Positions 5,936-62,920 of a DNA stretch of 64,000 nt are shown one piece after another; the stretch's first letter is position 1, and every line of letters starts with the position of its first letter. The stretch is taken from sequence record OR805295.1. One strand, 5' to 3'. Position numbers and translations under genes: made by a program. Below the pieces are notes generated by a model. The model made no database searches and was not told the DNA's origin. It worked only from the letters and a program-made list of their open reading frames with translations.

Positions 5936-6009
5936 AATATAACCTAAAATAGCCAAAAAGTACAACTACAATGTTGGAAGGACGGCAGTATTATAAAAAA
6001 GGACATTTT

Positions 6010-6255
6010 ATGACAAAACCATTCGATATTTCTAAATTTAGAAAAGATATTACTAAAAGTATCACTGGCATTAGTACAGGATTTAATGACCCAACTATTT
6101 GGATTAGTACCGGCAACTATACTCTTAATTATCTCATTAGTAGCGACTTTAATAAAGGCGTACCTATGGGTAAAGTAACTATGTTTGCTGGCGAGTCGGG
6201 TTGTTTGCCTGAAACTGCTAAAGTGAAAATTAGACTATCTAAGAAGCAATCTTAA
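6010..6255 (+). CDS. uvsX: UvsX/RecA N-extein (64 aa) fused to a 17-aa split-intein N fragment (6202-6252)
   Basis: RecA N-terminus ISTGNYTLNYLIS...GKVTMFAGESG, then CLPETAKVKIRLSKKQS and a stop codon. Confidence 0.92.
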   Translation: MTKPFDISKFRKDITKSITGISTGFNDPTIWISTGNYTLNYLISSDFNKGVPMGKVTMFAGESGCLPETAKVKIRLSKKQS

Positions 6256-6264
6256 CTGTCCAGT

Positions 6265-6304
6265 GTCTCCGTCGAGGATAAATACTTTTATCTAAAACGG
6301 AGAC
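6265..6304 (+). promoter_or_regulatory. SD-sequestering hairpin containing a late promoter, upstream of the endonuclease gene
   Basis: GTCTCCGT 6265-72 pairs with ACGGAGAC 6297-6304, which includes the SD GGAG. Inner stem GATAAA/TTTATC; GATAAATA at 6277-84. Confidence 0.75.
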
Positions 6305-6307
6305 TTT

Positions 6308-7741
6308 ATGGGAAATTACAATGTTCTTTCTACAAAAAACTTTAAGAAGCTATGTAATGAGTTAAACATAGTAACGATATCAGAAAAGTACATTTCTGAT
6401 ATACGTAAGATAGAAGATTCTGCTAAGAGCAAAGTGGATTCTGCATCTCAGCGTATGATATTAACTATGATAACTGTGAAAGTTCCCGACTTATATGATG
6501 CATATAACAGATACTATCAGCTCAGAACAGATGGTATTAGTACAAAAACTCAAGACAGTATTTCTTATATTTTTGGAAAAGACTTCCTCGAATCTGTTAA
6601 TTTACTAATCAGTAATAGATATAAAACTGCATTCCGTAAAGGAATGACAGTGGAAGAGGCATTTATAACACGTAATAAAGACTTTTCCAATAATGGTGTG
6701 TATTATAACCAGATGACTGATAAGCAAAAGAAACGTTTATCATTATTGCTTAGTGTGTATACACCAGAAAGGTTGGAGTTTTATAAAAAGACAATTTCGT
6801 TTTTTATTAAGTTAGATTTGACTAATTATGCAGGAAGAATGAAAAGACTGATGAAACTGGGATCTAGTACGTCTTTATATGCTAGCGTATTACGGTATGG
6901 TAAATCTGTCGGAAAAAGCACACATTCATCTGTATCTGCGGTAAAGAGAAACTATTTGCCTACTTCGATACAATATTGGATGGCAAAGGGGTTTGATGAA
7001 GATACTGCATTAGTGAAGATAAACGAACATCAACAGAAAGCAAGTGCCATGTCTTCCAAAAAACTAAAAGGCACTAGCGAATACTCTGTTCGATCAGTTG
7101 CATATTGGATTAAAAACGGGTATAGCGAAGAAGAGGCAAAAGGGAAAGTATCTAATATACAGAATACTTGGAAAAATGTATCTCAAGAAGAGCGTGATCG
7201 AAGAATAGAATCGTGGATGACTACAATGAGTCTTAAAACAGACGAGGAGAAATCTTTGATAAACCTTAAAAAAACTCACAGCCCGGAAGGGATAATGGCA
7301 AGGACAAATTGCGATTATGATATTGCATTTAAGCAAAGCGTTGATTTTTTTAAGAAACGAAATAATTCTTCTAAAGTATCTCAAGAACTATTTTGGGGAA
7401 TTGCCGAGGATATCGATACCGATGGAGTTTACTTTTCTGAACTAAACTACGAATACCCTGTTATGGGGAAAATAGTAGATTTCTATGATTCTAAAAGCAA
7501 AACAGTAATCGAATTTTATGGAAACTTTTGGCATGCAGATAGTACATATACTGATGACACACTGATATATGGAAAAACTGCTAAAGAAATAAGAGAATCG
7601 GACATTTACAGAGAAACGTTAATTAGATCATCTGATTTGGTTAGTGATTTTATAGTAGTTTGGGAAAAGGACTTTAGGAAGAATCCGAAAGAAACAATTA
7701 AAAATTTAGTTAATATTTTAAATAATAAAAGGAAATTTTAA
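6308..7741 (+). mobile_element. Free-standing homing endonuclease (Vsr/EDxHD/DUF559-like) between the split-intein halves
   Basis: C-terminal IVDFYD...VIEFYGNFWHAD...IVVWEKD; repeated YWxxxG(Y/F)xE(E/D)xA segments; position inside the fractured uvsX. Confidence 0.8.
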
Positions 7742-7744
7742 TAA

Positions 7745-9016
7745 ATGGAATACATCGAAAAGGAAGTAACAGTTAGTGAACTGAAGTCTCTCTACAGTAG
7801 TAATGAATACGAAATTGAGTTAGACACACCAGATGGCTGGCAAAAACTGGGATCTTGGTTCGATAAAGGCCCTCTTAGTATGGTGACGGTAGAAACGCAG
7901 GATGGGTTAGTTACTAGATGTGCAGTAAACCATATGATCGAAGTGGTAGACGGATCGGAAACTTTTTGGACACTTGCAAAAGACTTGTACGAAGGCCAAC
8001 AAGTGCTTACTGTAAACGGTGTCTCAACAATTAGTTCTGTAACTGAAAGTGGCATCGAAGAATGTTTCGATTTCGAAATACTCCACGAAAATCATCGTTA
8101 CTATGGTGATGGATTCTCTTCTCACAATAGTGGCAAATCGTATATAGTATCAGGAAACATTGTAAAAGATGCACAAGAAAAGGGAATTTTTGTTGTATTA
8201 CTTGATTCAGAAAATGCACTCGACGAATCTTGGCTACATGCACTAGGTGTAGACACCGGACCGGAAAAAATGTTACGCATCTCTGTATCGATGATAGATG
8301 ATGTAGCAAAAATTATTAGTGATTTTGTTAAAGATTACAAGACTAATTATGCCGAACTACCTAACAATGATCGACCGAAGGTGCTTTTTGTTATTGACTC
8401 GCTCGGAATGTTATTGACACCAACGGAAACTGCACAATTTCAAAATGGTGATATGAAAGGAGATATGGGCAGGAAAGCAAAACAATTAAAAGCATTGATT
8501 TCTAACTGTACAAATATGTTCGGCAACTTAGACATAGGCCTTGTTTGTACTAACCATACATATGCATCTCAAGATTTATTTCAGCCCGACGCTGTAATTT
8601 CGGGTGGCAGCGGCGCAGTCTATGCCGCGTCAATTGTAGTGGCAATGCAAAAGTTAAAGTTAAAAGAAGACGAAGCAGGTAATAAAATTTCTGAAGTAGC
8701 TGGTATTCGTGCAGTATGTAAAGTTGTGAAATCTCGATATGCAAAGCCGTTTGAGACAGTAAAAGTAAATATTCCATATGATACAGGTATGAGTCCGATA
8801 TCGGGTCTATTTGACTTGTTTGAAAAAACAGGTAAACTTGTAAAACAAGGCAATAGATATAAGTACATAACCAAAGATGGTACCGAAATGCTGTATTATA
8901 GGAAAGAATGGAATGATTACGATAAACTAAAAGTAATTATGAATGAATTTACAGACGAAGACCTAGGCAATGTCGTAGAAGTGGAAGAGGGTCATTTAGA
9001 AGAGTTCGATGAATAA
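7745..9016 (+). CDS. uvsX: Split-intein C fragment (128 aa, 7745-8128) fused to the UvsX/RecA C-extein
   Basis: Intein blocks CAVNH, CFDFEI and SSHN, then +1 Ser: SGKS..., LLDSENALD, FVIDSLG, ISGGSG and KSRY RecA motifs. Confidence 0.93.
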   Translation: MEYIEKEVTVSELKSLYSSNEYEIELDTPDGWQKLGSWFDKGPLSMVTVETQDGLVTRCAVNHMIEVVDGSETFWTLAKDLYEGQQVLTVNGVSTISSVTESGIEECFDFEILHENHRYYGDGFSSHNSGKSYIVSGNIVKDAQEKGIFVVLLDSENALDESWLHALGVDTGPEKMLRISVSMIDDVAKIISDFVKDYKTNYAELPNNDRPKVLFVIDSLGMLLTPTETAQFQNGDMKGDMGRKAKQLKALISNCTNMFGNLDIGLVCTNHTYASQDLFQPDAVISGGSGAVYAASIVVAMQKLKLKEDEAGNKISEVAGIRAVCKVVKSRYAKPFETVKVNIPYDTGMSPISGLFDLFEKTGKLVKQGNRYKYITKDGTEMLYYRKEWNDYDKLKVIMNEFTDEDLGNVVEVEEGHLEEFDE

Positions 9017-10844
9017 ATTATGCGAAACAGATCGTATTAATATTATCAAATTACACTTCGATGATTTAAAATCTGTATCTGAATTAAAGAAAATATATGG
9101 AGTCTCTTATGATGTCATTAAAACCATCATAAGAGATGAAACGAATCGTCTGCCGTTGCAAGAAACTGATATAAAAATTTTGAAATTTAAAAAACTTGTT
9201 TCAAAGGAGTTGTTATTTGAATTACATGTAATTAAAAAACAATCATTTAATGAAATAAGAAAAACTTATAAGATTAATGAACTTCATTTAAAACAAGTGT
9301 TTAATGATTATGGAATACCAATTGAAAAGTGTTTATATACTGCTACTAACAAGAAGCGTAAAACAAAAAAGCCTGAAGATTTTACTAAAGACTTTTTCGA
9401 ACACTTAGTATATAACGAAAGACGAACAATTAGTTGGATAAAAAATAATTATAACTTTAATTTTGAAGAACTAAAACATCATTTAACACATTTAAAAATC
9501 GATTATACTAATTCGTTGCCACCTGCTGTAAAACATCAACAAGATAAAATATCTAGAGAAACTCTAGCAGAAGAATTAAAAATTAAATCTATTGTTGATA
9601 TAATAAATGAATACGGAATTTCTAGAACTTATGTAGAAAGCGTTATAAAAGAATACAATATACAGTATTTTACAAAACCGAAACATTCTATATTAAGTGG
9701 TAAAGAATCAGAAATTTACCGGATGTATTATGATGAATGTATGACTACATACCAAATAGCAGAAAATTTAGGAGTATGTCAATACACCATATGGAAAATA
9801 ATGGCAGATAACGGATGGAAAACACGAGAACCGATTAAAAAAATTGATTTGATTTGGAATGATATAAAAGAAGAAGTTGTTAAATTAATAGACAACGGTT
9901 ATACATTAGCTGCTTTATGTGAAAAATACGAAATAACATCTATTACTGAAAAGTTAATAGAAGAAGGTATAAAATATACAAAGGGAAATATTTCTTCTGG
10001 TCATGCAGAAATATCTGAATATGTGCGTTCATTGGGATTTAATGTAATCGACAATGATCGTACTATTATATTTCCGCGAGAAATTGATATTTTTATTCCC
10101 GAACTTAACATAGGAATAGAATACAACGGATTATATTTTCATAGCACACGAACAGAAGGAAATGTAACAAAGCATAGAGAAAAATATAGCATATGTAAAC
10201 AAAAAGGTATTCGTTTAATACAAATTTTTGAAGATGAATTTATTCATAAGAAAGAACTAGTAAAGAGAAAATTAGCGCACATTTTAGGAAAATCTAATAA
10301 TAAATGTTATGCAAGGAATTGTATAGTTAAAGAAATATCGGTAGCAGACAAACGAAATTTCTTTAAAAAATATCACATACAAGAAGATTCTGCATCCTCG
10401 TATGCATATGGATTATATTATGATAATGAATTAGTTTGTGCTATGTCTTTTCTTAAAAAGAAGAAATGTACAGAACTAGTTAGATATGCATCTTCTATGC
10501 ACGTGGTCGGCGGATTTTCTAAGTTGTTGAAATATTGCATTAATAATAACAAAATAGATGTTATAAACACATATGCTGATCTCAGATGGTCGAATCCGAC
10601 AAATAATGTATATGTAAACAATGGGTTTGATATACTGTATGAGACTGATTTTAATTACACTTATGTGAGTAAAGAGGATTTTTCAAAAAGGCTTAATAGG
10701 CAAAAATTTATGAAACACAAGTTGAAAAACATTTTATCAGATTTCGATAAATCATTAACAGAAGAAGAGAATATGAAAAATAATGGATTTTATCGAGTAT
10801 ACGATGCTGGCCATTTAAAATTGCAATATAAGGTTAATAAATGA
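9009..10844 (+). mobile_element. Putative homing endonuclease (Hef-like, PD-(D/E)xK) with multiple N-terminal HTH-like repeats
   Basis: EIDIFIPELNIGIEYNGLYFHS...LIQIFEDEF, then a YARNC...HIQ...VRYAS...GGFSKLL...YDAG module. Confidence 0.7.
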
Positions 10845-19641: not shown

Positions 19642-19681
19642 TAGTAATAGTAGATAAATATAACGAATAGGGGATACTGAT

Positions 19682-19921
19682 GTGAGTACTAGACGTAGTA
19701 TTTTAGAAGAACTTAATAATTATGTTCCTTCTAAGAGCAAAGAAGAATTGATAGAATATAGAGCAGAACATATAATACAATCTGCAATTCATCTAATTGA
19801 GTATATCGAATCTAATTACTCTGATGCAGACGCAGAGCAATTAGAAAAAAAATTACTTAGTAGTATCAAATACAAGGATGCTAAACGATTTAGTAAGTCA
19901 GTGAGAAAACTTAAGGAATAA
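19682..19921 (+). CDS. Conserved hypothetical protein
   Basis: GTG start with GGGG SD, after GATAAATA (19653-60). Confidence 0.65.
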   Translation: MSTRRSILEELNNYVPSKSKEELIEYRAEHIIQSAIHLIEYIESNYSDADAEQLEKKLLSSIKYKDAKRFSKSVRKLKE

Positions 19922-27592: not shown

Positions 27593-27628
27593 TGATAAAT
27601 ATATACAAAATTATAAGGTAATTTAGCT

Positions 27629-34171: not shown

Positions 34172-34224
34172 TATAAAAAGGGAACATTGTTCCCTTTATT
34201 ACACACAATATAAGGATAACATAC

Positions 34225-35364
34225 ATGAAATTTAAAACATTTGAACCAGAACAGTTTGATGCTACTAAAGAAGCTATGTTCTTCGGTCGGCCAATAAACG
34301 TATCTAGGTTTGATAGACAAAAATATTCATTTTTCGAAAAGCAAACTAGAAAACAGATAGGTTTCTTCTGGGTACCAGAAGAAATAGCAATGGATCAAGA
34401 TAAAGATGATTTTCATCGCAAATTAGACGCAGCCGGCAAACATATTTTTACATCAAATCTCAGTTATCAGATTTTGCTAGATTCTGTTCAGGGTAGAGCA
34501 CCTAATATTGCACTTACTCCGTTTGTGTCTATTCCGGAATTAGAAGGATTTATTCTTGCATGGACTTTTATGGAAAGTATACATTCGAGAAGTTATTCTC
34601 ACTTAATTAGGAATGTGTATCATGATCCAAAAGATGTGTTAGATAATGTAGTAAAAATAGAACCTATCATCGAACGTGCCAGCGCAGTTACAAAATACTA
34701 TGACGAGTTCATAGAATATGGTAATTGGTACAATATGCTAGGATATGGTAATCATATTGTAAACGGTAAAGAAATAGATATAAATCCGAAAAAATTGATG
34801 ACATTATTCTATAAAATGATGGTAGCCATAAACATACTAGAAGGTGTCAGATTTTATGTTTCGTTTGCATGTACATGGGCATATAGTGAATCGTTAAAAT
34901 TAATGAATAAATCTGCAAAAATAATTAAAATGATTTGCAGAGACGAAAACGTACACTTGGCAGTTACTACTACTATTCTTAAAAAGTTTGCAGATGGCTC
35001 AGAAGGCGAAGCATGGAAACAAATTGCAGAAAATTGCAAAGATGAAGTTTATGCTATGTATGAAGAAGCTGTTCAACAAGAACGCGAATGGGCAGATTAT
35101 TTGTTTAAAGATGGTTCTATTGTAGGTTTATCGTCTGCCATACTAAAACAGTATGTTGAGTTTATTGCAGATAGACGTTTGCATGCATTAGGTATGCAAA
35201 AAATATACAAACATGCTAGTAATCCACTTCCGTGGACAGAGCATTGGATTGGTTCTAAAACAACCCAAGTAGCGCCGCAAGAAGAGGAAATTACTTCGTA
35301 TACTCAGGGCGGAGTAAAAAATGATATTTCTGAAATTTATAATACAGGATTTAGTTTAGACTAA
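34225..35364 (+). CDS. nrdB: Ribonucleotide reductase class Ia, beta subunit
   Basis: FFWVPEE, DSVQGR, ESIHSRSY, LEGVRFY, RDENVH. Confidence 0.96.
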   Translation: MKFKTFEPEQFDATKEAMFFGRPINVSRFDRQKYSFFEKQTRKQIGFFWVPEEIAMDQDKDDFHRKLDAAGKHIFTSNLSYQILLDSVQGRAPNIALTPFVSIPELEGFILAWTFMESIHSRSYSHLIRNVYHDPKDVLDNVVKIEPIIERASAVTKYYDEFIEYGNWYNMLGYGNHIVNGKEIDINPKKLMTLFYKMMVAINILEGVRFYVSFACTWAYSESLKLMNKSAKIIKMICRDENVHLAVTTTILKKFADGSEGEAWKQIAENCKDEVYAMYEEAVQQEREWADYLFKDGSIVGLSSAILKQYVEFIADRRLHALGMQKIYKHASNPLPWTEHWIGSKTTQVAPQEEEITSYTQGGVKNDISEIYNTGFSLD

Positions 35365-35388
35365 ATAAATTAAAATACAGGAGTTCAT

Positions 35389-36411
35389 ATGCCAGAAGCA
35401 GTAAGATTAGGGGATATATGTAGCGGTCATCAAATTGGATATCCACCGCGCCCGAATGTTCAGGGTAGTCCTAACGTATTCGTGAATAATTTGCCAGAAC
35501 ACAGAGTAACAGATAAGTGGGATGTGCATTGCAGTCCCGCTGGGTCCTGTCACAATAGTACGATGGCAGTAGGATCCCCTAACGTCTGGGTAAATAATCT
35601 TCCTGCTGCTAGGCTAGGCGATTTAGTCGGTTGTACTTCGTTGGCAGCTCAGGGTAGTCCCAACGTTTTTATTAATAACGGCAACACTGATCCTATAATA
35701 GTAGATGATGTAATATTACCTAAAGACCAGAATGAATATATCAACGCAGTAGGAATTCTTCCTTGCGGTCCTTTAGATTATCAGGAAGGCGATCCTATTG
35801 CAGACGAATATGAAACAAATTCGGGGGGAGGACATTATCCTCCCCTACCCCAAACAACACCACCGCCGCCCATATCTAAACCTCCTGTAGATGAAAATAA
35901 TAATATTCCCCCGGCGCGTCCGCCGATACCCACAGAATGTCCGGTCATAACAGGTAGCATAGATTATTCTATTAGATTAAGTCCTAATTTTACAATAGGG
36001 GATTTATCTATAAAAGCCACATTTCCTCATGCTATAAAAGCACAACGTGGTCTAACTGTAAATGAAATAGTATGTAATCTTAAAAGTTTGGCAGAGCATT
36101 GCTTAGAACCTATTATAGCACAATATCCGGGAGCTAGAATAAATTCCGGTTTCAGGAATGTACAAAACGGCAAGTCTGATCACGAAAAGGGTTTTGCTGC
36201 CGATTTACAATGGCCAGGAAAGTCGTATGATCAATTATGGCAAATGGTTTTGTGGGTAAAAGATAATGTCCCGTACAAACAACTTATATGGGAGCATGGC
36301 AACATGCCTTGGATACACATTGCATACGCAAGGACCGGCGAAACGTCTGCTACTAGGGTAATGACTATGTATCAGAATCAATATAGTCCCGGATTAAAGA
36401 AAATGCGTTAA
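35389..36411 (+). CDS. PAAR domain (gp5.4-like) fused via a Pro-rich linker to a peptidase M15 (Zn D,D-/L,D-peptidase fold)
   Basis: Residues 1-97: AVRLGD...H...GSPNVFVN...AARLGD...C...GSPNVFIN. C-terminus: LSPNF, SGFR, SDH, AAD, WIH. Confidence 0.88.
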   Translation: MPEAVRLGDICSGHQIGYPPRPNVQGSPNVFVNNLPEHRVTDKWDVHCSPAGSCHNSTMAVGSPNVWVNNLPAARLGDLVGCTSLAAQGSPNVFINNGNTDPIIVDDVILPKDQNEYINAVGILPCGPLDYQEGDPIADEYETNSGGGHYPPLPQTTPPPPISKPPVDENNNIPPARPPIPTECPVITGSIDYSIRLSPNFTIGDLSIKATFPHAIKAQRGLTVNEIVCNLKSLAEHCLEPIIAQYPGARINSGFRNVQNGKSDHEKGFAADLQWPGKSYDQLWQMVLWVKDNVPYKQLIWEHGNMPWIHIAYARTGETSATRVMTMYQNQYSPGLKKMR

Positions 36412-36452
36412 CTAAATACATTAACTAGACACAAACACACAAGGAGAAAAAA

Positions 36453-39737: not shown

Positions 39738-40427
39738 GTGTCGTTAAACAAAACTAAAACTGATGCCGAACTAGGCAAAAAAGTACAGCAATATTTAATC
39801 CAACAAGGAGTAGAAACTCCTATGCAAGAGCAGACTCTAAACGTTAAAGAGCGGATAGATAAAATTGAATCTCATTTTGTTGAAATTATGAATGCACTTG
39901 CGTTGGATCTTTCTGACGATAGTCTTGCAGAAACGCCTCGCCGAGTAGCAAAAATGTATGTATCTGAGATATTCTATGGGTTGGATTATGAGGCATTTCC
40001 TAAATGCACCACTATTGAAAATAAATTTAATGCAAATGAAATGGTCTTAGTAAAAGATATAGATTTATATTCTCAGTGCGAACATCATATTTTACCAATA
40101 ATTTCTGGATCATCTTCTGGTCGAGGTGGAATATCGGTTGCTTATATTCCTAAAAATAAAGTAATAGGTCTCTCTAAATTAAATAGAGTGGCAGAATTTT
40201 TCTGCAAGCGACCTCAAGTTCAAGAACGACTCACATTGCAAATATTTCATGCATTACAGTATATTCTGGAAACAGACGATGTTGCTGTTTTGATTAACGG
40301 AAGGCATCTGTGTGTGGAATCTAGGGGCGTAGAAGATACAAGTTCGAGTACGATAACTTCTAAATTAAGTGGTGCATTTAGCAACGATCCTGCCACCCGT
40401 GCAGAATTTATGTCTCTTGTAAAATAA
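39738..40427 (+). CDS. folE: GTP cyclohydrolase I
   Basis: ETPRRVAKM, SQCEHHILP, GLSKLNR, RPQVQERL, HLCVESRG; GTG start with AGGAGG SD. Confidence 0.96.
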   Translation: MSLNKTKTDAELGKKVQQYLIQQGVETPMQEQTLNVKERIDKIESHFVEIMNALALDLSDDSLAETPRRVAKMYVSEIFYGLDYEAFPKCTTIENKFNANEMVLVKDIDLYSQCEHHILPIISGSSSGRGGISVAYIPKNKVIGLSKLNRVAEFFCKRPQVQERLTLQIFHALQYILETDDVAVLINGRHLCVESRGVEDTSSSTITSKLSGAFSNDPATRAEFMSLVK

Positions 40428-40431
40428 CAAA

Positions 40432-40464
40432 AACTACTATGGATAGATACTATCCATAGTAGTT
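40432..40464. repeat. Perfect 15-bp inverted repeat between folE and queD
   Basis: AACTACTATGGATAG-ATA-CTATCCATAGTAGTT, no U tract. Confidence 0.9.
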
Positions 40465-40494
40465 ACACATAGCATATTAATAAGGAATATAAAA

Positions 40495-41013
40495 TTGTGG
40501 CAGATTAATAAAAGTTTCAGTTTTGCATATGCTCACAGAGTCCATAATCAACACTTAGATGCAGATTTAGTTGAAGACACCAAATGCAAATGCAGGCATT
40601 TACACGGACATACAGGTAAAGTAGTTATTCATTTAACTGGAACTTCTTTAGTAAACGGTATGGTAACTGATTTTAAGCATTTAGGTTTTCTTAAAAAATT
40701 TATAGATGACGTAATCGACCATAAGTTTATTATAGATGCAAACGATCCTAATTTTAGTAAGATAACCAATGCATCTAAATATTCTACTATAAGTTTTGAG
40801 CACTATGGAATATTCGATACATCTGAAGAGACAGTAGAACACGAAAAGGAACATGCAGATAGTTTTGTAATAGTAGATTTTGTTCCTACTGCAGAAAATT
40901 TAGCTAAATGGATTTGGGAATATGCTGAAAGCATTTTAGAACAAAAAGGTATAACTGTTTCTAAAGTAGAATGGTGGGAAACTGATAAAGCTTGTGCAAC
41001 ATATATTGCATAA
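40495..41013 (+). CDS. queD: 6-carboxytetrahydropterin synthase / PTPS family, copy 1
   Basis: YAHRVH, CKCRHLHGH, MVTDF, DHKF, PTAENLA, WWET. Confidence 0.88.
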   Translation: MWQINKSFSFAYAHRVHNQHLDADLVEDTKCKCRHLHGHTGKVVIHLTGTSLVNGMVTDFKHLGFLKKFIDDVIDHKFIIDANDPNFSKITNASKYSTISFEHYGIFDTSEETVEHEKEHADSFVIVDFVPTAENLAKWIWEYAESILEQKGITVSKVEWWETDKACATYIA

Positions 41014-41030
41014 TATAAAGGTAGATATAA

Positions 41031-42257
41031 ATGTCGAAAGAAACATGCTCTTATTGCAATAAAGGCAAAGATGATGTGTCTAAGTTGTTTCGTAGCCCTG
41101 CTAAATATGGATCAAATGTATATATATGTGACCAGTGTGTAACTCAGTGCAACAATTTTTTAGAAACTGCTGAAACAAATGATCGGGAATCTAATAAATT
41201 AGAAATAAAATACACACCTGAAGAACTAAAGGAATTGCTAGATAAAGACATTGTAGGGCAAGATCACGCAAAAGAATTACTAAGTCTAGCAGTGTATAAT
41301 CATTATAAACGGGTAAACTATAACACTACTGAACATGATGTAGAGTTATCTAAATCTAACATAATGCTACTGGGACCTTCAGGCAGCGGTAAGACATTTT
41401 TAATATCTAGTATATCTAAATTGTTAAACATACCTTTTGTTTCTGTAGATTCTACTTCGCTAACAGAGGCAGGATATGTCGGAGATCATGTAGAGACTAT
41501 ATTTACTAGATTAATCGCAGAAGCAAATGGTGACATAGAACTAGCGCAACGTGGAATCGTATTTATAGATGAAATAGATAAGAAACGTTCTAAAAAAGGA
41601 ACAAATTCTGCAGGATCTGATGTTTCCGGCGAAGGCGTCCAACAGTCTTTACTTCGGGTGCTAGAAGGAACAACGATTAAATTAGAACTAAATTCTAACA
41701 GTATGTTTAGTCCTAGACAGGAAATTATGTTTGACACAACTAACGTTTTGTTTATAGTTGGCGGCGCATTTATAGGATTAGATGCAGTAATAAATAAAAG
41801 ACTTAGTTCTACTAAATCTCAAATGGGATTTGGTTCCGAAGCTGGTAAACCCATAGAAGGTAGTTTATTCTATGTAGAACCGGAAGATTTGTATACATAC
41901 GGTTTTATAAGAGAATTTGTAGGGAGATTTCCTGTTCTTATTGCGTTTCATGATGTAACAGAGACTATGCTTCGTCGAATTCTAGTAGAGCCTAAAAGTT
42001 CTATACTTAAACAATATCAAACTATGTTTAAATTAGATAACATTGAATTAGAATTCGATGAAGATTTTATAAAATCTGTTGCTACTACAGCGTTTAATAG
42101 GAAAACAGGCGCTCGTGGTTTAAGAACTATTTTAGAAAAAGAACTATCTAGTATAGCATATAGATTGCCTTCTATAAGACGAGAAGGGTTTAGCAAGATT
42201 ATTATACACGAACTAGGAAAACATAATTTCATAAAAGGGCAAAATGAAGACATTTAA
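41031..42257 (+). CDS. clpX: ATP-dependent Clp protease ATPase subunit ClpX
   Basis: CSYC...CDQC zinc-binding domain, GPSGSGKT, GYVG, IDEIDK, VSGEGVQQSLL, GARGLR. Confidence 0.95.
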   Translation: MSKETCSYCNKGKDDVSKLFRSPAKYGSNVYICDQCVTQCNNFLETAETNDRESNKLEIKYTPEELKELLDKDIVGQDHAKELLSLAVYNHYKRVNYNTTEHDVELSKSNIMLLGPSGSGKTFLISSISKLLNIPFVSVDSTSLTEAGYVGDHVETIFTRLIAEANGDIELAQRGIVFIDEIDKKRSKKGTNSAGSDVSGEGVQQSLLRVLEGTTIKLELNSNSMFSPRQEIMFDTTNVLFIVGGAFIGLDAVINKRLSSTKSQMGFGSEAGKPIEGSLFYVEPEDLYTYGFIREFVGRFPVLIAFHDVTETMLRRILVEPKSSILKQYQTMFKLDNIELEFDEDFIKSVATTAFNRKTGARGLRTILEKELSSIAYRLPSIRREGFSKIIIHELGKHNFIKGQNEDI

Positions 42258-42450
42258 TATAATTACTGGTCTTACTGTAGAAGTAAGACACGATAACTTT
42301 AACCAAGCACTTAGAACTTTTACTAAAAAGGTTCAAAATTCAGGAAAATTAAAAGAAGTTCGAGAACGCGAATTCTATGAAAAGCCTTCTGTAAAAAAGA
42401 CAAAAGCTAAAAAAGCAGCAATTCAACGCCAGAAAAAGAAAAAAATATAA
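42244..42450 (+). CDS. rpsU: Ribosomal protein bS21
   Basis: VEVR...ALRTFTKK...EVREREFYEKPS. Confidence 0.88.
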   Translation: MKTFNIITGLTVEVRHDNFNQALRTFTKKVQNSGKLKEVREREFYEKPSVKKTKAKKAAIQRQKKKKI

Positions 42451-42452
42451 TA

Positions 42453-42788
42453 ATGGATCTTTGCAGGATTTTAAATAATGAACTTATGTTTTGCAGAAAT
42501 CGCAGGAATAAACTCTATTATGGCCTACGGCAATTGAATAAAGTTGACATCCCTGTAGATCCTGCAGATTCTTTACTTATTTCCAGCATAAAAATGGATA
42601 TAGAACAGCTCCAATCGTATAAAGATGCTATATCCGAATGCAGTAGACTTGAACAACGTATAATCTGTATAGATAAAACTATGCAGTATATCCGTCGGTA
42701 TTGCAATCATAAGTTTGTGTATCACAATACTAATTATCATACAAATACAGATGCAGAAAAATGCATTTATTGCGGATTAATAATTTAA
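42453..42788 (+). CDS. Hypothetical protein
   Basis: 111 aa; C-terminal CNH...CIYC. Confidence 0.55.
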   Translation: MDLCRILNNELMFCRNRRNKLYYGLRQLNKVDIPVDPADSLLISSIKMDIEQLQSYKDAISECSRLEQRIICIDKTMQYIRRYCNHKFVYHNTNYHTNTDAEKCIYCGLII

Positions 42789-42789
42789 T

Positions 42790-43260
42790 ATGGCATATTT
42801 TTCAACTAAGAGATTTGGACCTATTTCCACTGGCCATCGTCAATGGAAAGATACGGGTCATTGCAGCAGAATACACGGATACGGAAGAACAGTGAAGATT
42901 GTTTTTTCTGCTACTACATTAGATGATAAATTGTGGGTAGTAGATTTCGGTGGATTGAAAGATTTTAGGAAATGGCTGGAAGAACAATGGGATCATAATG
43001 TTTTAGTTGCATCTGACGATCCCAAGTTAAATATCCTTAAACAAATGGAACAAGAAGGTCTAGTTAAATTAAATATAATGGATGTTAAAAAAGGCCATGG
43101 TCCCGGAATAGAAGGTTCATGTAAGCATCTGTTTGACTATTTGAATCCCATTATAGAAAAACAATCTGGCGGAAGATGTTGGGTCCATAGTATAGAAATA
43201 TGGGAACACGAAAACAATTCCGCTATATACGAAACATATAAGTCAACATTTAAAAGATAA
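42790..43260 (+). CDS. queD: QueD/PTPS-family protein, copy 2 (HGY variant)
   Basis: TGHRQW, HCSRIHGY, WVVDFGGLK, DH, EHENNSA. Confidence 0.8.
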   Translation: MAYFSTKRFGPISTGHRQWKDTGHCSRIHGYGRTVKIVFSATTLDDKLWVVDFGGLKDFRKWLEEQWDHNVLVASDDPKLNILKQMEQEGLVKLNIMDVKKGHGPGIEGSCKHLFDYLNPIIEKQSGGRCWVHSIEIWEHENNSAIYETYKSTFKR

Positions 43261-62744: not shown

Positions 62745-62920
62745 AAGTATGACTCCCGGTTAAAATCTTATTTTTAGTGTGATAATATGTATAAAGACCT
62801 AATCTTTACATTGTTATTTATGTGTGTTATTATACATTAAGACTTAAGAAAAATCTACATCTAATTTTAAATATTAAGATTAATGTGTAGATAAATATAA
62901 TATATTATTTGGATAGTAAA

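Follow-up and report, generated by a model that had tools for sequence, protein, structure and literature searches.

The first 64 kb of the 287-kb record of Pseudomonas phage Paride (OR805295.1; Wroclawvirus), hereafter called the window, were analysed around the gene Paride_0042, whose product carries an N-terminal PAAR domain, a proline-rich tether and a C-terminal domain that, by its sequence, is a metallopeptidase of the M15A/LAS type. Paride is a lytic, PA5oct-like jumbo myophage of P. aeruginosa. The gene and its parts are as follows.

35378..35383, + strand: ribosome-binding site with AGGAG, read directly from the sequence, with the ATG 5 nucleotides (nt) downstream.
35389..36411, + strand: Paride_0042, whole gene, 340 amino acids (aa) plus stop, a single uninterrupted open reading frame (ORF).
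35389..35685, + strand: PAAR domain, aa 1-99, with putative zinc ligands H14, H47, H55 and C82 (Pfam, PHROG, PDB sequence and fold matches).
35686..35760, + strand: post-PAAR segment, aa 100-124, with strands at 103-105 and 108-110 and a helix at 117-123 in the model (predicted local distance difference test score, pLDDT, about 68-81).
35761..35931, + strand: acidic, then proline-rich tether, aa 125-181 (composition and AlphaFold model).
35932..36408, + strand: predicted M15A / LAS-fold zinc peptidase domain, aa 182-340 (PHROG 894, the Pfam matches of relatives, and fold).
35938..36075, + strand: stretch between C184 and C229, two cysteines that co-vary (counts in 150 representatives).
36175..36204, + strand: predicted first zinc-binding motif, S263-x-H265 ... 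G268-x-A270-x-D272 (invariance, and alignment to the zinc-site motif of the Sonic hedgehog N-domain).
36292..36318, + strand: predicted second active-site stretch, E302 ... W308-x-H310 (invariance), in which H310 would be the third zinc ligand and E302 the likely general base.

Six other Wroclawvirus records contain the Paride_0042 protein at 100% identity, and PA5oct (gp245) and MIJ3 contain it at 99.7%; it is known under several labels. The Paride annotation reads 'PAAR motif of membrane proteins' and files the gene under 'moron, auxiliary metabolic gene and host takeover'; the PA5oct record calls gp245 a 'putative baseplate hub sub and tail lysozyme, muramoyl-pentapeptidase', with a note of tandem mass spectrometry after electrospray ionization (ESI-MS/MS); and in phage Milchi the annotation under the match includes the label 'endolysin'.

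The PAAR domain was recognized by the Pfam model PAAR_motif (PF05488; score 59.3 bits, cut-off 27, E=4.5e-16) and by PHROG 281, which matches aa 1-99 (E=5.9e-27). A PDB sequence search with Paride_0042 returned 4jiv_D (E=3.3e-9) and also 4jiw_D, and in the alignment the His/His/His/Cys set of 4jiv_D corresponds to H14, H47, H55 and C82. An apical zinc site of three histidines and one cysteine is a PAAR feature known from the PAAR structures of 2013; at these four positions, the residue present in the window is kept in only 23-69% of the sequences of the PAAR-M15 fusion family. In the AlphaFold (AF2) model of Paride_0042, built on 39 relatives, the pLDDT is 86-98 over aa 1-99, and Foldseek superposed this part on the solved PAARs 4jiw_D, 4jiv_D, 4ku0_D, 9vyi and 9f4b_BA with template modelling (TM) scores of 0.89-0.94 and root-mean-square deviations of 1.1-1.9 Å. 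Among these matches are T4 gp5.4 (4ku0_D, TMt 0.91) and the PAARs of the baseplate structures of phage P1 (9vyi) and Klebsiella phage KP1. By Pfam, the N-terminal part contains PAAR only, with no OB domain or beta-helix in the same chain, those being found in Paride_0442, described below.

Behind the PAAR domain, a stretch of the post-PAAR segment (aa 100-124) recurs in many relatives in the alignment of 39. The tether that follows contains 17 prolines in 57 residues (30%), with eight Asp and Glu against two Lys and Arg, and because the model confidence is very low over aa 125-155 (pLDDT <50), this part is probably flexible.

The C-terminal domain is matched by PHROG 894, labelled 'endolysin' (E=8.6e-10), and the NCBIfam scan of this domain alone gave sub-threshold matches or nothing. 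Among the full-length relatives (30-65% identical), 26 of 39 matched Pfam Peptidase_M15_3 at E<=0.01, the best at 1.4e-9. Stand-alone phage relatives, annotated as M15A peptidases or endolysins, are 27-33% identical over about 85% of the domain, and aligned together they match Peptidase_M15_3 with E=1.2e-22. Holin and spanin genes adjoin such relatives in the phages Salva and DSL-LC04, and this placement in lysis cassettes identifies the stand-alone relatives, by genomic context, as wall-cutting enzymes. They have S253, R256, S263, H265, G268, A270, D272, Q298, E302, W308 and H310 in common with Paride_0042. A HMMER scan of 1.84 billion cluster representatives yielded 1224 relatives, 587 of them at E<=1e-10; in the best 150 of the 1224, taken at 50% clustering, R256, H265, D272, E302, W308 and H310 are invariant and S263 is nearly so. 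In the alignment of 39 relatives, the invariant positions are S263, H265, G268, D272, W308 and H310. A word-indexed protein search with aa 176-340 added no relatives beyond the earlier ones.

Structural comparisons agree with this assignment. In a profile search, the hedgehog N-domain has a Glu opposite E302 and a His opposite H310, which we take to be active-site residues of that domain. A sequence-only PDB search with the C-terminal domain gave no meaningful match and a profile of the full-length relatives found PAAR chains only; the domain-only profile, including the stand-alone endolysins, matched hedgehog N-domains and VanY-type carboxypeptidases, at E-values of only about 0.01-0.03. The domain-only AF2 model has a pLDDT of 92.7, and its top fold match in the PDB is 1lbu (E=1.1e-3, probability 1.00, TMq 0.51, 135 columns), the zinc DD-peptidase of Streptomyces albus, the type enzyme of M15A, followed by hedgehog N-domains, the M15 endolysin LysB4 (6akv) and MepA (1tzp). 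Fold neighbours in BFVD are named 'Peptidase M15A, C-terminal' or 'Gp5 N-terminal OB-fold domain'. Because these E-values are of modest strength (1e-3 and weaker), the fold comparison backs the sequence evidence and does not stand alone. Neither Pfam nor the fold search found a lysozyme-family match in Paride_0042, the enzyme domain being of the metallopeptidase type. No assay data for any member of this M15 subfamily were found in the literature searched.

The cysteines C184 and C229 tend to occur together: both are present in 116 of the 150 representatives, neither in 28 and only one in 6. In one alignment, the pair was found in 6/6 spike- or PAAR-borne members and in 0/4 stand-alone endolysins. 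It is possible that the two residues form a disulfide that staples the tether to the first helix, as would fit a protein exposed outside the cytoplasm.

A sequence-only reading of the window had described a complete PAAR domain with His/Cys zinc ligands, an acidic then Pro-rich linker and an M15 domain with SxH, AAD and WxH zinc ligands. This domain layout was confirmed, with the PAAR domain extending over aa 1-99, the linker corresponding to aa 125-181, and the three motifs present as S263-x-H265, A270-A271-D272 and W308-x-H310. That reading had also stated that the gene sits apart from other tail genes, and indeed Paride_0042 follows nrdA and nrdB, with the Paride baseplate genes at 219-229 kb of the 287-kb record. 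Its neighbours are nrdA, nrdB and small ORFs, none of them with a Pfam-annotated lysis function, a holin or a spanin, and no immunity-like or type VI secretion system (T6SS) gene lies near it.

In a six-frame ORF scan of the whole 287-kb genome, made with hidden Markov models from the family alignment, Paride_0042 was the only PAAR (E=4e-40; next best 1.6), with the limit that very divergent PAAR-like folds could escape such models, and it was also the only M15 of its family. The gp5-like spike of this phage is Paride_0442 (PA5oct gp133, 477 aa), which combines a Phage_base_V OB domain with a DUF2345 VgrG-type beta-helix. Whether the gp5 of this genome lacks a lysozyme domain had been proposed as a check, and Pfam, PHROGs and a PDB sequence search found none in Paride_0442/gp133. 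The PA5oct paper names gp133 a 'tail-associated lysozyme' homologous to T4 gp5 (PMC7318152), a name that seems to be inherited from T4 gp5. The spike genes are located at L004:14290-15723 (PA5oct gp133) and L005:24701-26134 (Paride_0442).

Virion proteomics, another check proposed, is available from published work on PA5oct: gp245, the 99.7%-identical counterpart of Paride_0042, is one of three putative wall-degrading proteins that ESI-MS/MS revealed in virions purified with polyethylene glycol and CsCl (PMC7318152).

To place Paride_0042 among its relatives, we compared the genomic context of other members. In the phage Aura, a 212-aa gp5-like OB protein is directly followed by the PAAR-M15 gene and then by wedge genes; in Vibrio phage 1.244.A (Ackermannviridae), a 286-aa protein with Gp5_OB and Gp5_trimer_C is followed by one small ORF, PAAR-M15 and gp25; and in Astolliot (Otagovirus), an unannotated 423-aa gp5-like ORF is followed by one ORF, PAAR-M15, gp25 and wedge genes. 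No lysozyme domain was found in the gp5-like proteins of these three phages. The Astolliot spike ORF (OM982621.1, L010:5026-6297; GTG start; Gp5_OB at 3e-35, Gp5_C and Gp5_trimer_C) fills a 1.26-kb annotation gap.

The order nrdA-nrdB-PAAR-M15 recurs in a 64% identical metagenomic homologue (L015), and since this contig keeps the Paride arrangement, the position beside the ribonucleotide reductase (RNR) genes is an old one there. For this homologue (L015:7932-8963, a Logan SRR21418948 contig; P0002, 320 aa), the gene call of the database starts too late; the ORF that begins at a TTG with a ribosome-binding site has 343 aa and regains the first PAAR strand. Three divergent PAAR-M15 members lie on phage-like metagenomic contigs, on which no T6SS genes were seen. 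On one contig with a divergent member (L017:4492-6222, JGI 3300048580), a dUTPase gene beside it appears to be split, with matches to an intein-splicing domain in both pieces. Among 185,579 species genomes, a scan by exact peptide patterns from a tight alignment, of limited sensitivity, found one relative, in a metagenome-assembled genome (MAG), and the same type of scan with the single Paride_0042 protein found no match.

The same peptidase module is also carried by spike proteins. The pf16 protein gp208 consists of Gp5_OB and the M15 module, and Cr30 gp5 (701 aa) combines Gp5_OB, a tail lysozyme domain and the M15 module at its extreme C-terminus. In Caulobacter phage Cr30 (L014:4357-6715), two different wall-cutting domains are thus present in one spike protein, whose end is overlapped by a gene for a bare PAAR of 86 aa. 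Among the best 150 representatives, the M15 module is C-terminal in nearly all, and an N-terminal PAAR is present in 41; the 109 non-PAAR representatives include 27 with Gp5_OB, 13 with Phage_base_V and 13 with Gp5_trimer_C. With gp5 and gp25 models built from few sequences, 80 IMG/VR loci were divided into 46 gp5-OB-M15, 16 PAAR-M15 and 18 other or partial arrangements. A separate PAAR was found within 6 kb at 20/46 of the gp5-M15 loci, as against 0/16 of the PAAR-M15 loci. Across 38 relatives, the identity of the PAAR part to Paride_0042 shows no correlation with that of the M15 part (r=0.06), which suggests module exchange. As far as can be read from these sequences, the PAAR-M15 arrangement is common to many phages, databases labelling one half or the other, and the peptidase module on its proline-rich tether is an exchangeable unit that hangs either from the C-terminus of the spike or from the PAAR protein.

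We consider it likely that Paride_0042 is a tail-needle tip protein with a tethered peptidase that cuts peptidoglycan at entry. The PAAR cone would sit, in one copy per virion, on the blunt end of the gp5/VgrG-like spike trimer of Paride_0442, and a proline-rich, partly disordered tether of about 80 residues would join the cone to the M15A/LAS zinc peptidase of ~18 kDa. Before contraction, tether and peptidase would lie beside the tip; upon sheath contraction, the tip would cross the outer membrane and bring the peptidase into the periplasm, where it would cut peptide stems or cross-links of the peptidoglycan by the needle, so that the tube could reach the inner membrane. Given that the Paride spike has no wall-cutting domain of its own, Paride_0042 would do the job of the lysozyme domain of T4 gp5. 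We infer the binding to the spike tip, the copy number and the timing of expression, as well as the catalysis and the bond that is cut. The earlier proposal that this phage tethers its wall-cutting enzyme to the spike tip is supported by the sole PAAR of the genome, the lysozyme-less spike, the detection in virions, the baseplate context of the relatives and the occurrence of this peptidase subfamily at the C-terminus of gp5-like spikes, the location at the tip and the catalysis remaining predictions.

Several observations weigh against this proposal. The C-terminal domain of Paride_0042 alone scores 13.6 bits against Pfam Peptidase_M15_3, below the cut-off of 23.2. In our own alignment, W308 sits at the first His of the His-x-His pair of the hedgehog N-domain, so the chemistry may differ in detail where hedgehog N-domains carry His; since W308 is invariant in the endolysin-type relatives too, it can be regarded as part of a working family pattern. 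The proteome in which gp245 was detected also flagged RNR subunits and thymidylate synthase, and its authors count seven 'virion-unrelated enzymes' (PMC7318152); for this reason the detection of gp245 is supportive and, taken alone, not decisive. The same virions gave peptides of the stand-alone T4-type lysozyme gp173, which corresponds to Paride_0485 (PMC7318152), and it could instead be this lysozyme that cuts the wall at entry. The spacer between nrdB and Paride_0042 is 24 nt long and has no terminator-like site, the only late-type motif there being degenerate, so that Paride_0042 may be co-transcribed with nrdB.

An alternative that starts from the same observations places Paride_0042 at the tip with an M15 domain that does not cut, serving as a peptidoglycan-binding anchor, a plug or a spacer, while the wall is opened by another virion enzyme, such as Paride_0485 (gp173), or by force alone. 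The score below the Pfam threshold, the position of W308 and the T4-type lysozyme in PA5oct particles all speak for it, as does the existence of LAS-fold domains without a known protease role, the hedgehog N-domains being the next-best fold matches. Even so, we regard it as unlikely, because the three zinc ligands, R256 and E302 are invariant throughout the 150 representatives and the same residues, W308 included, are shared with the relatives encoded in holin/spanin lysis cassettes.

It is still less probable that Paride_0042 acts mainly as a lysis enzyme, an endolysin working from within at the end of infection, with the PAAR domain as an accessory for folding or targeting. This possibility draws on the 'endolysin' labels of PHROG 894 and of the Milchi annotation, on the distant relatives that are true endolysins, and on the location of the gene outside the Paride tail module. 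It is countered by the lack of a holin or spanin near the gene and by two other lysis-type wall hydrolases in the Paride genome, Paride_0173 (Hydrolase_2) and Paride_0485 (Phage_lysozyme). The finding of gp245 in purified virions, the absence of any other PAAR in the genome, the baseplate clusters in which the PAAR-M15 genes of relatives lie, and the cysteine pair, seen in spike-borne versions and absent from the four aligned stand-alone endolysins, also argue against it.

The host P. aeruginosa has T6SSs, which counts for a third alternative, that Paride_0042 is no part of the virion and instead a phage-carried 'moron', a PAAR effector loaded onto a host T6SS, in line with the category in which the Paride annotation places the gene. 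Although a PAAR with a C-terminal enzyme is typical of T6SS effectors (PMC8651086) and the best NCBIfam match of Paride_0042 is a T6SS PAAR domain model, we give this alternative very little credence, since that match (65.6 bits) falls well short of the equivalog cut-off (124), neither immunity-like nor T6SS genes occur near Paride_0042 or at the three divergent metagenomic loci, the only relative among the species genomes lies in a MAG, gp245 was detected in virions, and without Paride_0042 the genome would have no tip protein.

Paride_0042 as an enzyme-bearing tip protein can be compared with several known types of system. In T4, gp5 contains the inserted lysozyme, of which each spike has three copies, and the PAAR is a bare one. 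The needles of T4 (gp5/gp5.4) and Paride would be alike in having a spike of OB domain and beta-helix, a PAAR cone as cap and one wall-cutting domain on the central needle; they differ in that the Paride spike is without an enzyme and the predicted zinc peptidase is fused behind the PAAR on a long tether. As a consequence of this fusion, the Paride enzyme would probably be present in one copy.

The gp5-M15 spikes (Cr30 gp5, pf16 gp208 and those of the Melnitz phages) share with Paride_0042 the same M15 subfamily at 38-42% identity, the same invariant residues, the cysteine pair, the preceding proline-rich tether and the position of the module at the extreme C-terminus of a central-needle protein. 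In contrast to Paride_0042, the module is borne there by the trimeric spike and would be present three times; often a separate gene for a bare PAAR comes next, and Cr30 has a lysozyme in addition. The stand-alone M15A endolysins (Stenotrophomonas phage Salva, 'endolysin endopeptidase'; DSL-LC04, 'peptidase M15A-like') and 1lbu would have the fold, zinc site and catalytic residues in common with the Paride domain. They differ as free enzymes of 140-160 aa in holin/spanin cassettes, or, in the case of 1lbu, as a secreted bacterial enzyme, and have no PAAR, tether or cysteine pair.

Specialized PAAR effectors of T6SSs, such as Tas1 (6ox6) and Tre23 (7pq5), both of which were among the matches, resemble Paride_0042 in that a cargo is covalently fused to the tip protein of a contractile injection machine, and VgrG-3 of V. 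cholerae is a comparable case. These effectors are encoded in bacterial genomes together with vgrG, immunity and T6SS genes and kill rivals, whereas the Paride_0042 family is found on phage contigs and would serve genome entry. Some T6SS cargoes also attack peptidoglycan, for example amidases such as Tae4 (PMC8651086). The description of the Paride tip as T6SS-style is therefore apt for the architecture, a PAAR with a C-terminal enzyme, and does not extend to the genomic setting, as hardly any members of the family occur in cellular genomes and none was seen beside T6SS genes.

In the usual description of myophages, the wall-cutting enzyme is inside the spike protein, as in T4 gp5, and a bare PAAR sits on top. 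A survey of 224 jumbo phages found that most myovirus jumbo phages carry a stand-alone PAAR unfused to any effector (PMC7824862). The PA5oct authors already list gp245 as a virion-associated tail muramyl-pentapeptidase (Lood et al. 2020, PMC7318152), and the word PAAR does not occur in their paper. In the literature searched, which did not include subscription journals, no description of a phage PAAR fused to a wall-cutting enzyme was found. With the Paride_0042 family, the PAAR-cargo architecture of T6SSs would have a natural precedent in phages, and the Paride tip is a concrete target for cryo-electron microscopy of the baseplate in a phage of therapeutic interest.

Among the M15A relatives are L,D-endopeptidases that cleave 3-3 cross-links, and stationary-phase sacculi are enriched in these. 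Paride is notable for replicating on deep-dormant P. aeruginosa (PMC10761892). A long shot, to which we give little weight, is that a tip-borne M15A peptidase may help to decide which physiological states of the host such phages enter. If this were true, a peptide-bond cutter at the tip, as compared with a glycan cutter on the spike, might suit such remodelled walls, and phages would have invented cargo on a PAAR for entry, with T6SSs taking it up later for toxins.

Regarding expression, the motif GATAAATA lies 27-37 nt upstream of the starts of Paride structural genes, including sheath, tube and baseplate genes, and in the window it precedes the virion genes at 19682, 27629 and 62921. The sites relevant here are the following.

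19653-19660, 27594-27601 and 62890-62897: GATAAATA sites at scattered virion structural genes, with further sites at 6277 and 26011.
35360..35367, + strand: candidate weak late-type promoter element, a 6/8 match to GATAAATA that overlaps the nrdB stop codon (35362-35364).

The annotation names Paride_0446 a late sigma factor, and GATAAATA looks like an unreported late-promoter motif of the Paride genome. The PA5oct paper describes only sigma-70-like promoters and an unexplained low transcription of six structural regions (PMC7318152). The octamer at 35360-35367 differs from GATAAATA at the two 5' bases, and its spacing of 27 nt to the ATG is right. The nrdB gene would, by its function, be expected to be expressed before the structural genes. 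The statement that Paride_0042 has its own late motif at 35360 did not hold up in this form, in view of the 6/8 match, the overlap with the nrdB stop codon and the short spacer devoid of a terminator, although the spacing agrees with it. An 8-base pattern of T4-type late promoters has no site at 35360 and shows no enrichment in the window, with 12 sites against 21 expected, and TAAATA occurs 15-40 nt upstream of 15/94 window genes checked. In the metagenomic homologue L015, an exact late-type octamer lies about 28 nt before the TTG start, in a 180-nt spacer and behind a hairpin-like inverted repeat. Late expression is plausible for the PAAR-M15 family and may also apply to Paride_0042.

The octamer found at 35360-35367 recurs at 36411-36418, right after the Paride_0042 stop and about 40 nt before the next small ORF (36453). 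In the gap between nrdA and nrdB, a 9-bp GC-containing palindromic hairpin with T/A runs (34177-34197) is terminator-like on the minus strand.

Further along the window, downstream of the nucleotide-metabolism block, the annotation places a GTP cyclohydrolase gene, two QueD-like genes and a homologue of ribosomal protein S21 (42244-42450) in the interval 39822-43260, and the same genes are found in the same order in L015. In the region 5971-10844, two ORFs, at 5971-6255 and 7745-9016, carry the annotation UvsX-like recombinase and are separated by an unrelated ORF. A homing endonuclease gene follows these two ORFs, and at another locus (L007) a DNA polymerase is, by annotation, likewise split around a homing endonuclease gene.

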